From the sequence record NC_028899.1: a stretch of 64,000 nucleotides of DNA; one strand, written 5' to 3'. The notes under the pieces are model-generated. The model was not told the DNA's origin and did no database searches. It saw only the letters and a list, made by a program, of their open reading frames with translations. This document shows, piece by piece, positions 37,040-60,293 of this stretch (the first letter of the stretch is position 1; every line of letters begins with the position of its first letter). Made by a program: the position numbers and the translations under genes.

Positions 37040-37492
37040 GAAGGCGCAGCCTAAGCTTAGTCTACAAGGCCGTAAAGGATCTTACGTGCATATCCAGGAC
37101 GCCAATCATCTCGTCCATAAATTTGCATCAGTTCCTCAAACGACTCGTAGTACTCCGGATCCCATTGATCTTCAAGGCCGTAGCACGAGCAGTGAGACGC
37201 GTACACTTCGAAGAATTGCTTCTTCTCGTGATCGTATCCAAACACCACCGAAGATCCTTCATAATCCTGGCACTCATACCCTGCGTACAGGATCTGGTAC
37301 TTCGGATCATCTACGATTCGAAATTGCTCGAAAACATCTTCGCGCGATTTAAATTCGTCATGGAAAACGGGTTCTTTCGACAACAGCGTAGCTTCGTTCA
37401 TGATAATTCCAGTATTGAGTTAAGGAAAGCATTTCCTATACGCACTCTTTACTGAACTTCTCACTACCTAACCACGCCTAAGCTGCGCCTTC
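37040..37492 (-). repeat. 16-bp imperfect inverted repeat (37040-37055 / 37477-37492) bracketing ORF 37057..37401
   Basis: Minus RNA GAAGGCGCAGCUUAGG pairs fully with CUUAGGCUGCGCCUUC (14 Watson-Crick + 2 GU). Confidence 0.8.
37057..37401 (-). CDS. Hypothetical phage protein (114 aa)
   Basis: YAGYECQDYEGS...FEVYASHCSCYGLEDQW motif, recalled as seen in diverse phages. Confidence 0.7.
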   Translation of the reverse strand: MNEATLLSKEPVFHDEFKSREDVFEQFRIVDDPKYQILYAGYECQDYEGSSVVFGYDHEKKQFFEVYASHCSCYGLEDQWDPEYYESFEELMQIYGRDDWRPGYARKILYGLVD

Positions 37493-37500
37493 GAAGAAAA

Positions 37501-37590
37501 AGCCTGAGATCTATATCGCCGGGGGAGACGCTTTGTTAGAGCCGCATACCGTAGGAGGTTGGAGCATGCGCTCGAACTCGATCTCAGACC
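37501..37590 (-). ncRNA. Candidate 90-nt sRNA with anti-Shine-Dalgarno and C-rich loops
   Basis: 11-bp closing stem; long hairpin with loop UCCAACCUCCUACG; second hairpin with loop UCCCCC; U-run after. GU pairs work only on minus. Confidence 0.6.
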
Positions 37591-37630
37591 AAAAAAAATA
37601 GAAGGTGAACTGTGAAAGCTTCACCCCCTT
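37591..37630 (-). terminator. Intrinsic terminator between the two small RNA elements
   Basis: GGTGAAGCT-TTCAC-AGTTCACC followed by TTCTATTTTTTTT. Confidence 0.7.
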
Positions 37631-37640
37631 ATTAAAGAGG

Positions 37641-37750
37641 TGCCCAGAACGCATACCCGTCGCCGCGGGCGCATCCTGATTGGGTCTGTGTCATCGCCTG
37701 CGTGCGTTCTCGCCGCGTGGCTATGAAATCAAGACGATCGTTCTGGGCAA
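37641..37750 (-). ncRNA. Candidate 110-nt structured RNA
   Basis: Perfect 11-bp closing stem TGCCCAGAACG/CGTTCTGGGCA; inner GTCTTGATT/AATCAGGAT, TCAT/ATGA, GCG-AGAA-CGC and GCCCG/CGGGT stems. Confidence 0.55.
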
Positions 37751-37775
37751 ATGATAAAGACTTTCTGTTATTTTT

Positions 37776-38552
37776 TTATTTCCTTTTCAACTCATTCTGC
37801 CATTGCCAACGGCGGCAACGATAGAAGTATCGAATCATCATCTCCTGAGGACCGGAGTCATCATTCGATGATGGTGCTCGGTTGGCGATCTGCTTCAATG
37901 TTTCCGTGCGACGCTTCACGTAATGTTCCGTGATCGATAACGTCATTAACGGATTGACGATTTTCTTACCGCCATCGTCTCCATCATAAACCACGAATTC
38001 ATCTTTGCCGTCTTCGCCGAGATTCCACCGACAGATCACGACACCTTCTTTCTCGTAATAGGTCCGTATTTGAGTATAGCAATACGGACCCGACTTGTAT
38101 TCGTTATCGTGGATTACGAGATCGTCGTGTTTGGTCACGAGCTGGAAATGGTTCCGACGCAGTTCAGTGTACGCACTGCGACCGGAGATCCGCTGATACG
38201 CCAGTTCTGCCGCCATGATCCGTTCTTCCTTTCTGGCTTCTTGCCAAGGAATGAATTCTTTCGAATTCATTTCATAGAAGACCGTGAGGATGAATTTCAA
38301 CAACCGGTTCTGACGATGTCCTTGCGGATGGGCTGTCTCAGGAAGAGAGAACAGTCGAAGCAGCCGCTCGTCTACCTTGAACTTGTCTTTATTCGCGATT
38401 TCGTGTTCATCATTCTCGCGAATGAAAGCAGCAGGCGCCAGGTACATCTTTCCGGCCAAGTTCCTGTCTGTCGGCTTATCCGAAAGAATCTCGGACAGCA
38501 TGAAGTAAGGCCCAGCCAGCGTATTGAATTCTTGAATGACTTGCAGTAACAT
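37776..38552 (-). CDS. Hypothetical protein (258 aa)
   Basis: ORF with AGGAGAGG RBS. Confidence 0.7.
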   Translation of the reverse strand: MLLQVIQEFNTLAGPYFMLSEILSDKPTDRNLAGKMYLAPAAFIRENDEHEIANKDKFKVDERLLRLFSLPETAHPQGHRQNRLLKFILTVFYEMNSKEFIPWQEARKEERIMAAELAYQRISGRSAYTELRRNHFQLVTKHDDLVIHDNEYKSGPYCYTQIRTYYEKEGVVICRWNLGEDGKDEFVVYDGDDGGKKIVNPLMTLSITEHYVKRRTETLKQIANRAPSSNDDSGPQEMMIRYFYRCRRWQWQNELKRK

Positions 38553-57836: not shown

Positions 57837-58493
57837 TTACATGTTCTCGTTCAACACCGAAGTCGGATCTTTCTTTTTCGCCGCATAATGCGCTTCGAGC
57901 ACATCCCACGTCGTCAAGATGTCGCCTTGTTCGATCACATCCAGAGGACGTTCGTCGTCTTCCGGCAAGAACAGATCGTGATAGGCGACCCATGCGTCGT
58001 CGCCGAAGCGATCGAAGTTGTTCGTGATGCCATGACGATCTTCCGTCCAGATGACACCATCGATCACACGCATGAAGTCCGGATCGTCGAACCCGCGACG
58101 ACCAGGGTGATAGTTGCGATACGAATCCGAATAGCCGTCGATTTCCTGATTGGCTTCCAGGATTCTCGACATGATGTTCGCCATGAGATAGCGCTGCATC
58201 GTCGGCTTGGCACGTTGCAGATCGTCGATTGTCCTGAGCGGACGCACGATATCCTTACGCATCGGATCGGCAGTATCGCGAACCCGGGCACGAATACGCC
58301 GCAGTGCTCGTTCGCCATTATAGCGTTCGAACACTTCGCGCGAGTCCTCAAAGAACCCATTGAAGAGTTCCGTGATTCTCGGCGCATAGCGTTCTACCCG
58401 GTCTCTCAGATAACCGAGAGTTCCCTGATGGGGTTCTCCAAACAATTCGGCGTCGATATCGTCTTCGCTGATATAACCGCCTCTGATTCCCAT
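57837..58493 (-). CDS. Conserved chimallivirus protein, phiKZ gp59-like
   Basis: 218 aa coupled to nvRNAP beta-prime N; YLMANIMSR...IDGYSDSY segment; synteny. Confidence 0.55.
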   Translation of the reverse strand: MGIRGGYISEDDIDAELFGEPHQGTLGYLRDRVERYAPRITELFNGFFEDSREVFERYNGERALRRIRARVRDTADPMRKDIVRPLRTIDDLQRAKPTMQRYLMANIMSRILEANQEIDGYSDSYRNYHPGRRGFDDPDFMRVIDGVIWTEDRHGITNNFDRFGDDAWVAYHDLFLPEDDERPLDVIEQGDILTTWDVLEAHYAAKKKDPTSVLNENM

Positions 58494-60124
58494 TAGTGCA
58501 GTGTCCTTACGCTAAACATTTTGTACATCCGATCCAACTTCTGGGGATCGGGTCTGCGCGCTGCTTCGCTGTAGTTGTACAGATGGTTCACCACAGACGA
58601 GACGATCGGCTTGGGCAACGGCATGTTGTCGCCGATCTTGCGCGGGCCGGACAGTTTCCACGCACCGAAATGCGGGGCCAGATAACGGAGTTCGTCCGTC
58701 GTCCAGTTGTCCATAGTCAGGAAGCCAAACATCTGATCGCCATCGAAGTCCGCGTTCGGGCCAGCAACCGAGATGATCGGATAGCTGATCGACATGATCT
58801 TCGGATTGGTCTTGATCTTCGTGATGAACATCCGCTGAATCGAAGTACGATACATAGACGGATTGCGGCCGAAGATACACGGGATACCGCGCTTGGGCGG
58901 ATACTTACGTGCGTCATAGGCGCCTTCACCAATCGGCTGACCAATCAGTTTGCCATCCTGGATCGACGCTTCGATCGTCGGAGACAATTCATACGGCGAT
59001 TCATCCAGCAACTCGTCGAAGAGCTCTTCGAGAAGCGGATGATGAACGTGCGTATGCGCATTCAGGAAATACGCTGCGTCATTGTGACCGAAGCCACGTT
59101 TGAACAGCTTACCCATCAGGTGCAGACGGAACGTCGTGACTGCCAGAGCCCACGGCAGATGAATCTCATCGTGATGATGCGGCTCCGTGAGCGAGTTGAT
59201 AACCGCCCGGAAGCTGAACCAACAGCGAGTCGCATATACGTGTTTTCGAACGAGGCCCGGTTTGCCGGCGATGAAGTTCTTTTCATAGTCACGTCCGAAC
59301 TCGGACAGTGCTTCGGAAAGCTTGGACGCACGATTTTCCTTTTGGGCAATCGAGAAGTCCTTGATCTCGCTGTCGATGCCGGAGATGTTCCGCACCGCAT
59401 CGATAATCGTCTTCAGCGTCGTATCCATGTACGTACCGAACTTGGTGTTTTCAATCACCAAGATGGTCTTGTTGTGGATCGGCACATACCGGGAGAAGAT
59501 GCGATCGCGATACATTGCGATGAAGATCTGCATCTCCTTGAGTTTTTCTTTTTTGTCCTTTGTTGAACTGAATTGTGGAAACTCACAAAGCTGACCGATG
59601 ATCCAGTCAAAATTGTGATAGAAGAAGTTCAGCCCCCGACGAATGCCGCGATTTTCGAGTTCGTCCATCCATCGACCATGATGCTGGCGATTCGGACGAT
59701 AGTCCGTATTCGTCAGATACTTGATGATGTTGAACTTCTGATTGCTGTTGTTCGAGAGGCTGAAGAAGTCCGACAGAAGCCGCCATGCCTGAGGATTGAT
59801 CAGGGCATCGACGCCTTCAGGCCGCTCAACCCAGATGATGGGCTCAAGCGGTTTGTCGAGCATCGGCTGGACCGCAGTCTTGCATTTTCGACAGATGGTC
59901 CCCTTTCCCTTTCTGTCGATGTGATGCTGGCCGATGGTTGCTCCGCACGAACACTTCGGAATAGTGTCGAGCAGATCGGTGTCGTTATACGTCACGAAGA
60001 AATTCTCGTCGAACGTCGATTTTTCCGTTTCGAGCGTATCGAGGACCTTGTTGACGATGATCGGGTCTGTTGTTATTTGCGAGAATAGCTCGTCATAGTT
60101 CTGCATTTCCAAATGTGTGCCCAT
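58493..60124 (-). CDS. rpoC: Non-virion RNA polymerase beta-prime N-terminal (catalytic) subunit (phiKZ gp55-56.1-like, uninterrupted)
   Basis: NADFDGDQM catalytic motif, GRNPSMYRTSIQ, N-terminal CSC...CRKC zinc finger; AAGGAGGT RBS. Confidence 0.95.
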   Translation of the reverse strand: MGTHLEMQNYDELFSQITTDPIIVNKVLDTLETEKSTFDENFFVTYNDTDLLDTIPKCSCGATIGQHHIDRKGKGTICRKCKTAVQPMLDKPLEPIIWVERPEGVDALINPQAWRLLSDFFSLSNNSNQKFNIIKYLTNTDYRPNRQHHGRWMDELENRGIRRGLNFFYHNFDWIIGQLCEFPQFSSTKDKKEKLKEMQIFIAMYRDRIFSRYVPIHNKTILVIENTKFGTYMDTTLKTIIDAVRNISGIDSEIKDFSIAQKENRASKLSEALSEFGRDYEKNFIAGKPGLVRKHVYATRCWFSFRAVINSLTEPHHHDEIHLPWALAVTTFRLHLMGKLFKRGFGHNDAAYFLNAHTHVHHPLLEELFDELLDESPYELSPTIEASIQDGKLIGQPIGEGAYDARKYPPKRGIPCIFGRNPSMYRTSIQRMFITKIKTNPKIMSISYPIISVAGPNADFDGDQMFGFLTMDNWTTDELRYLAPHFGAWKLSGPRKIGDNMPLPKPIVSSVVNHLYNYSEAARRPDPQKLDRMYKMFSVRTLH

Positions 60125-60164
60125 CCAACCTCCTTCTAAGCACGATTGTAAAAAGACTTACAGC

Positions 60165-60200
60165 CAGTATCCAATAGATGATATATCGTTGTACTTTTTT
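60165..60200 (-). promoter_or_regulatory. Putative early promoter plus conserved leader
   Basis: Minus strand AAAAAAGTACAACGATATATCATCTATTGGATACTG. Confidence 0.7.
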
Positions 60201-60293
60201 ACATATAGAGAACTGTGTATAAAAAAACACAACGATAAACCAAAAGAAAAATCCCAAGACTACTTGGATTTTTCTCATTGTCCTGCGCAGACA

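Follow-up and report, generated by a model that had tools for sequence, protein, structure and literature searches.

A conserved three-way-junction RNA of Chiangmaivirus jumbo phages with a 16S-like loop complementary to the start region of a phage RNA polymerase gene: a possible riboregulator

Small RNAs of the RNAIII/RsaE type of Staphylococcus aureus block translation initiation by a kissing interaction between a C-rich loop and a Shine-Dalgarno (SD) sequence that is displayed in a hairpin loop of the mRNA; RNAIII carries UCCC motifs, has several hairpins, and often recruits RNase III. Among the small RNAs known from transcriptomes of phiKZ-like phages, we know of none with a known function or target, and to our knowledge neither an anti-SD loop nor a target has been proposed for those of phages 201phi2-1 and phiKZ. 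The latter RNAs, sRNA001 to sRNA011 of 201phi2-1 and an sRNA located upstream of gp182 in phiKZ, were detected by ONT-cappable-seq of these nucleus-forming jumbo phages; they are short, non-coding, intergenic or part of 5′-UTRs, and often arise from a terminator near the start site; some show conservation across genera, and their roles are unexplained (PMC11512511). Small RNAs with CU-rich loops directed against ribosome binding sites (RBSs) have been documented in the host clade, namely in Burkholderia (RF02278), where overexpression of ncS27 slows growth (PMC5688073).

The window analyzed here, a stretch of 64,000 nucleotides from record NC_028899.1 (record positions 158889–222888), is part of the genome of the Ralstonia jumbo phage RSF1, genus Chiangmaivirus. 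RSF1 is a phiKZ-like, nucleus-forming jumbo phage, and Chiangmaivirus phages are under development for biocontrol of plant pathogens of the genera Ralstonia and Burkholderia. RSF1 and RSL2 are sensitive to rifampicin, indicating that host RNA polymerase (RNAP) is needed (PMC5468394). All genes from ORF204.1 to ORF210 are encoded on the minus strand, and the element described below sits in a 374-nt gap between ORF207 (37776–38552) and ORF206 (37057–37401). The features of the element, its surroundings, and its predicted target are compiled in Table 1.

Table 1. Coordinates (window positions) of the RNA element, the neighboring module, and the predicted target region
Feature	Position	Strand	Remarks
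Three-way-junction RNA element, ~90 nt (closing stem P1, long arm P2, short hairpin P3)	37501..37590	minus	MFE fold
P1 5′ arm GGUCUGAGAUC	37580..37590	minus	11 bp with 37501-37511
P2 long arm, GUU-C-GAGC-GCAUGC ... GUAUGC-G-GCUC-U-AAC	37535..37577	minus	fold and homologs
Apical loop UCCAACCUCCUACG, 14 nt	37550..37563	minus	contains ACCUCCU
Loop 11-mer UCCAACCUCCU	37553-37563	minus	perfect complement of beta-prime start region
Invariant loop core CCAACCUCC	37554-37562	minus	includes 16S-like ACCUCC
P3 short hairpin CGUC[UCCCCC]GGCG	37517..37530	minus	4 bp
Intrinsic terminator, phage-canonical	37591..37625	minus	GGUGAA...UUCACC + UAUUUUUUUU; directly abuts element
Conserved upstream hairpin	37641..37749	minus	11-bp base UGCCCAGAACG/CGUUCUGGGCA, invariant; interior ~90-100 nt, highly variable
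A-rich box AAUAAAAAAAUAA	37768-37780	minus	precedes hairpin 37641-37749
Inverted repeats GAAGGCGCAGCC... around ORF206	37040-37061 + 37471-37492		
RNAP beta-prime (N-terminal part) gene, RSF1 ORF227	58493..60124	minus	phrog_2987, E = 9e-172
Predicted target AGGAGGUUGGA	60124..60134	minus	SD + spacer + A of AUG of RNAP beta-prime gene
Hairpin in beta-prime translation-initiation region	60117..60143	minus	GUGCUUA / UGGGCAC; 13-nt loop displays target

Folding of the minus strand of the element yielded a minimum free energy (MFE) of −34.2 kcal/mol with a z-score of −3.26, and none of 200 dinucleotide shuffles was as good, whereas the plus strand of the same segment had a z-score of −0.45. The modeled structure is clearly non-random. 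In the predicted fold, the P2 arm is capped by a loop of 12–14 nt, CUCCAACCUCCUAC, with unpaired probabilities of 0.87–1.0. The heptamer ACCUCCU within this loop equals the anti-SD sequence of 16S rRNA. The MFE fold reproduces the architecture proposed in the earlier note, which had described an 11-bp closing stem, a P2 arm presenting an anti-SD loop, and a second, short hairpin with a C-rich loop.

In blastn searches of 50,697 phage records, a single copy of the element was retrieved from each of nine Chiangmaivirus genomes (RSF1, RSL2, FLC6, FLC8, FLC4-4C, FLC4-5C, FLC4-11C, RsoM3USA, and SURPRISE13) and from no other record; the nine homologs represent only six distinct sequences. Each homolog, when folded alone, adopted the same three-way junction with a CCUCC motif in the apical loop (9/9). 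A covariance model (R1) gave scores of 81–112 bits in every Chiangmaivirus and located one copy, with no extra copies, in the RSF1 genome. In a structure-guided alignment, 95% of the cells were standard pairs, as compared to 27–41% when the partners were slid by 1–3 columns. Both sides had changed at four pairs, two of them in the 4-bp stem P3 (C-G to U-A). Since the family is narrow and comprises six distinct sequences, the evidence from covariation is positive but thin.

Conservation is distributed unevenly over the fold. The inner six base pairs of P1, GAGAUC/GAUCUC, are nearly invariant, with a single G-C to A-U swap in SURPRISE13, whereas its outer pairs vary yet stay paired (UA/UG/CG), and the apical stem of P2 alternates between U-G, U-A and C-G and between A-U, G-C and G-U. 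Invariant nucleotides are found in the inner part of P1, the junction strands (GA, AAAG, AUA-A), the bases of P2 and P3, and the loop core. The strong conservation of the junction nucleotides hints at a tertiary fold, or at a partner such as a protein or ligand, neither of which a simple display scaffold needs. The loop core CCAACCUCC is identical in all six distinct sequences, so the loop on which the earlier note had built its proposal is conserved among the relatives; the second C-rich loop, which it had also listed, is not conserved in sequence, reading UCCCCC in RSF1 and SURPRISE13 and CUAACC or CGUG elsewhere. DNA identity of the element across the genus is about 84%, compared to only 74–77% for the neighboring ORF208 protein.

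Twenty of the 168 alignment cells are G-U pairs, which become A-C mismatches on the opposite strand. The z-scores agree, ranging from −2.2 to −3.3 for the gene strand in every lineage and from +0.15 to −1.35 for the opposite strand, indicating that the functional molecule is an RNA in gene direction. We consider it very probable that a genuine structured RNA, conserved and specific to one strand, is encoded here and that it represents a new family.

Searches for known families returned no candidate. Rfam reported nothing relevant, either on the window at gathering thresholds or on 37380–37800 at E ≤ 10, and ARAGORN (0 tRNA or tmRNA genes) and the Rfam tRNA model gave no match on the window. 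Membership in RF02278 was rejected: there was no covariance-model match at the gathering score (window) or at E ≤ 10 (37380–37800), and RF02278 has a two-hairpin architecture, while the element is a three-way junction whose P3 loop is CU-rich in RSF1 and SURPRISE13 only. Known riboswitch and leader families were discarded as there was no Rfam match and P1 does not overlap the downstream SD. Identity with an intrinsic terminator was dismissed likewise, since the terminator scan called none on the element, the U-run past P1 is not conserved, and the true terminator lies at 37591–37625. A small protein-coding gene on either strand was rejected because 1-nt indels and a variable T-run break both a 47-aa minus-strand ORF and a plus-strand mini-ORF; one-nucleotide indels also rule out the gp216 annotation that covers the element in FLC4-5C. 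The mini-ORF (37553–37602, plus strand) comprises 11–19 aa and runs into an A-run, its RBS being created by the loop complement.

Pattern scans were performed with GAGCGCANNCNCCAACCTCC on viral contigs, with CGAGTTNGAGCN{5,10}CCAACCTCC on viral and metagenome contigs, and with GATCGAGTTN{30,55}AACAAAGCG on viral and genome contigs, which together yielded about 200 loci. The covariance model was applied to the first 78 of 120 genome loci. Among the loci put through the model, none passed except those of RSF1 and RSL2 (best score of the others, 17.4 bits; E = 0.24), and the loci outside RSF1 and RSL2 were treated as chance matches.

Upstream, the element abuts the terminator so closely that it starts at the last T of the T-run or at the next base. 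This arrangement leaves no space for a dedicated promoter, and a scan for sigma-70-like promoters called none for the element on the minus strand. The terminator tail, composed of the hairpin and (C)TATTTTTTTT(GG), recurs at about 25 sites genome-wide, mostly after genes, and TATTTTTTT is the top over-represented 9-mer of the 223-kb RSF1 genome; a recurring element was sought after other terminators, and none was found. All relatives keep the terminator at this position, its hairpin having one of two alternative sequences. Upstream of the large hairpin, the relatives have an A-rich box and a TATG-like motif, for which RSF1 reads TATC. The upstream hairpin could be an sRNA of about 150 nt of the leader-terminated type. 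The A-rich box, hairpin, terminator and element move as one module, and the genes upstream of it differ between phages (ORF207 in RSF1, ORF200 in RSL2, and an ORF208 homolog in the others).

ORF207, coding for a protein of 258 aa without PHROG match, occurs at this position in RSF1 only. In the relatives the ORF208 homolog runs straight into the RNA module, and in RSL2 this site is occupied by another small ORF, ORF200; the differing ORFs mark the junction as a hot spot of gene gain and loss.

Downstream of the element, two arrangements were observed. In RSL2, FLC8, FLC4-11C, and SURPRISE13, a gene coding for a DUF3307 membrane protein starts about 20–25 nt past P1. The other five phages have an ORF206 cassette, bracketed by inverted repeats of 17–24 nt, between the element and the DUF3307 gene, and the whole cassette is missing from the four phages named above. 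The cassette resembles a small insertion of the mobile or moron-like type, or else a long-range RNA stem around the gene. ORF206 codes for a protein of 114 aa assigned to phrog_8792, with a weak match to an integrase-labeled PHROG, and inverted repeats were also noted at two further loci (local coordinates 1641–1657/2079–2095 and 1640–1663/2062–2085). P1 is followed by a U-run, UUUUUCUU, in RSF1 only; the other eight phages lack it and read ACCCC or AUCCU, suggesting that in most relatives the element is part of a longer transcript, that is, of a 5′-UTR. Taken together with the abutting terminator and the layout of the downstream genes, the restriction of the U-run to RSF1 is explained most simply by an element that forms the 5′ part of the ORF206/DUF3307 transcript.

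The window contains exactly two copies of AGGAGGTTGGA: one is the loop complement (37553–37563), and the other lies at 60134–60124 on the minus strand. The perfect complementarity of the loop 11-mer to a site reaching from the RBS to the A of the ATG at 60124, as had been claimed from inspection, was verified; this ATG opens an ORF of 543 aa, ORF227, whose product was identified as a phage RNAP beta/beta-prime subunit by its match to phrog_2987 (E = 9e-172) and by annotation. Within PhiPA3, the best match is to gene 054, annotated as RNA polymerase beta subunit, and we take the ORF227 product to be the N-terminal beta-prime subunit of the non-virion RNAP, related to gp55 of phiKZ. The RefSeq record NC_028899 places the start of ORF227 at TTG 60112, whereas the GenBank records of FLC6, FLC8, SURPRISE13, and RsoM3USA use the ATG and that of RSL2 uses a later start. 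Since tblastn alignments of ORF227 with RP12, PhiPA3 and others start at residue 1, and since the N-terminus of the RP12 protein (MGIHL) shares the pattern MG.HL with that of RSF1 (MGTHL), ATG 60124 was accepted as start codon. It is preceded, at a distance of 4 nt, by AAGGAGG and is conserved in the relatives. Judging from these alignments, the start of ORF227 in RefSeq is probably four codons short.

The mean unpaired probability of the target site was 0.81 in the predicted fold. As the target is presented in a 13-nt hairpin loop, a loop-loop kiss would be geometrically natural; however, the hairpin is invariant, so it cannot be probed by covariation. The target is conserved in the relatives except for RSL2, which has GGAGGCUGG. 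That the target is conserved does not count as specific evidence, as the beta-prime leader is invariant throughout. In RP12, which represents the nearest other genus, the beta-prime gene has a weak RBS, GAGG, without the extended motif, and thus RP12 provides no independent support for the pairing. The region upstream of the beta-prime gene (60194–60230, minus strand) shows a conserved T-rich box and then CTATATGTAAAAAAG, which is preceded by a terminator; this 15-mer is unique in the window and holds a TATG that resembles the start motif of phiKZ late promoters.

When both strands of the whole 223-kb RSF1 genome were scanned for duplexes with the loop, the beta-prime start region was the best non-self site (−20.8 kcal/mol), so that the target singled out in the earlier note also ranks first phage-wide. 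The next-ranked sites are located in the arms of two perfect hairpins or outside annotated start regions. The GTAGGAGTATGGAG sites, which rank second and third, were rejected as targets, since they form arms of two perfect terminator-like hairpins and are therefore inaccessible. A perfect 14-bp hairpin, CCATACTCCTACCC-N4-GGGTAGGAGTATGG, is present in two copies (RSF1 record positions 90561–90592 and 121623–121654), just downstream of the endolysin and major head protein genes and without a T-run; the 3′ arms resemble the loop complement (GTAGGAG-TA-TGGAG versus GTAGGAG-GT-TGGAG).

A match of this kind may in part be expected from the enrichment of SD sequences, a caveat that had been raised along with the original observation. 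It weighs less than feared, because strong SDs are rare in RSF1: AGGAGG occurs at 4 start sites and GGAGG at 22 (~237 genes), which argues against a generic SD effect. In simulations with random loops that keep CCUCC, a perfect 11-nt complement was present at some position of the 223-kb genome for 11% of the loops, and inside 6,892 candidate start regions, a set that is deliberately over-generous by roughly 30-fold, for 2.8%. An analytic estimate based on the 4 real AGGAGG or the 22 GGAGG start sites gave a chance of about 0.01–0.02. With a chance of about 0.01–0.03 for a start-site match, the target match is suggestive, not decisive.

Across the genus, the predicted duplex has an energy of −20 to −21 kcal/mol in five of the six lineages, and the invariant core CCAACCUCC is the exact complement of GGAGGUUGG. 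Of the two pairs that flank this core, one is missing from RsoM3USA and the other from SURPRISE13. In RSL2, a U-to-C change in the target (GGAGGCUGG) meets an unchanged loop, and the resulting uncompensated C-A mismatch weakens the duplex to −16.5 kcal/mol, which on the sequences compared counts against co-evolution of loop and target. As regards the functional class of RBS-occluding sRNAs with C-rich or anti-SD loops, the motif is predicted to be unpaired in a stable hairpin loop in all nine homologs, and the extended complementarity to SD and start codon is conserved, though weakened in RSL2.

The best functional reading of these data, which we put forward tentatively, is that of a riboregulator that occludes an RBS by pairing of its loop with the start region of the beta-prime mRNA. 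A structured RNA of about 90 nt would be transcribed in the direction of the surrounding genes, probably not as an independent gene but as the leading part of the ORF206/DUF3307 transcript or as a fragment processed from it, and transcription would reach the element by read-through of the terminator or from an unrecognized start. The three-way junction would keep the 14-nt loop open, so that its core CCAACCUCC could pair with GGAGGUUGG in the initiation region of the non-virion RNAP beta-prime mRNA; the first contact would be a loop-loop kiss, as the target is itself presented in a hairpin loop. By covering the SD sequence and the start codon, the kiss would exclude the 30S subunit and lower beta-prime synthesis, and the outcome might be a timing or feedback control of the phage polymerase. 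Action in trans would be possible from a 5′-UTR as well as after processing. Expression, the RNA ends, pairing in vivo, and repression are steps that we infer.

The trans-acting repressor of the non-virion RNAP envisaged in the earlier note is thus supported in part by the conserved minus-strand RNA, the covarying stems, the invariant pairing loop and the rank of its target, while the RSL2 mismatch, the missing room for a promoter, the restriction of the U-run to RSF1 and the strongly conserved junction nucleotides speak against it. In its full form, namely a jumbo-phage riboregulator whose 16S-like loop kisses the RBS of the phage's own non-virion RNAP beta-prime mRNA and exerts post-transcriptional timing or feedback control, the proposal is possible but on the doubtful side. 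The loop might also act on strong RBSs of the host.

The main rival explanation, comparably doubtful but plausible, is that the element acts in cis, as a 5′-UTR element of the DUF3307 operon with or without ORF206, serving to stabilize or process the mRNA or forming a riboswitch- or operator-like aptamer; the loop would then contribute to the fold or to a local pseudoknot instead of serving as a trans-acting seed. The short distance from P1 to the DUF3307 gene in four phages, and the insertion of the ORF206 cassette exactly between element and DUF3307 gene in the other five, are consistent with such a role, as is the leader-like module of A-rich box, hairpin and terminator that precedes the element, which is reminiscent of the premature-termination 5′-UTR units of 201phi2-1 (PMC11512511). 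Conserved junction nucleotides combined with covarying stems are, moreover, a pattern typical of aptamers. However, the SD of the downstream gene is not sequestered by P1, SD sequences at this position vary (AAGGA, AGGAG, CGGAG), and their 4–5 bp of pairing potential with the loop are not conserved. No known riboswitch or leader family matches, and a role in cis leaves the invariance of CCAA beside CCUCC unexplained.

It is unlikely that the element is a protein-binding or decoy RNA, for example for a factor or nuclease that recognizes the 3′ tail of 16S rRNA, or a sponge for strong host SDs. A decoy would account for the invariance of the loop and of the junction strands alongside variable helices, and for a loop containing the 16S anti-SD sequence, but the identity to 16S rRNA is limited to 7 nt. 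A sponge would spare most phage mRNAs, since strong SDs are rarely used by the phage itself (22 GGAGG in ~237 genes); its stoichiometric action, however, would require very high abundance.

Somewhat less probable still is the lack of a dedicated function, the element being a compound terminator or insulator structure between transcription units with coincidental loop complementarity. The immediate vicinity of the terminator, the U-run UUUUUCUU behind P1 in RSF1, and the 11% chance that the genome holds an 11-mer complement fit this explanation, whereas the missing U-run in the other eight phages, the higher conservation of the element DNA (~84%) than of the ORF208 protein (74–77%), and the compensatory changes that maintain all three helices do not. 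A functional plus strand, on which AGGAGG-N7-ATG (37553–37569) would drive synthesis of a tiny peptide (MRSNSIS...), is highly improbable: the RBS is of textbook quality with a 7-nt spacing to ATG (GTG in SURPRISE13), AGGAGG is rare in the genome, and one third-position change (TCG to TCA) is synonymous, but the length of the T-run varies, so that the length and C-terminus of the peptide (11, 12, 13, or 19 aa) are not conserved, conservation and covariation reach into the would-be untranslated sequence upstream of the RBS, G-U pairs and z-scores favor the minus strand, and the neighboring genes from ORF204.1 to ORF210 as well as the adjacent, strand-specific terminator all belong to the minus strand.

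The riboregulator reading thus offers a concrete, testable pairing, a loop-to-loop match of 9–11 nt at the translation start of a polymerase subunit that is essential to the phage. If it were true, a phage that runs its own transcription would also tune translation of that machinery by RNA, and this would be the first functional assignment of any chimallivirus small RNA. Should the pairing not be real, the element would still define a new family of conserved structured RNAs that Rfam lacks and that marks a leader region.

In function, the predicted riboregulator comes closest to anti-RBS sRNAs with CU-rich loops, such as those of RF02278 and of the RNAIII/RsaE type. Compared with the systems described previously, the likeness to the double-hairpin or toxic sRNAs of RF02278 (ncS03, ncS05, ncS27, ncS62) lies in the CU-rich anti-RBS loops and in the Burkholderia host clade. 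RF02278 RNAs, however, consist of two tandem hairpins of about 60 nt, while the element is a three-way junction of about 90 nt; it has the motif consistently in one loop only, is phage-encoded and present as a single copy, and has a phage gene as best predicted target. RNAIII and RsaE are unrelated to it in sequence, size and host, and the analogy to their loop-SD kisses is functional only, the pairing of the element being a predicted one. The sRNAs of 201phi2-1 and phiKZ occupy other genomic positions, whereas blastn and the covariance model place the element in Chiangmaivirus only; by sequence, it is unrelated to the jumbo-phage sRNAs described so far.
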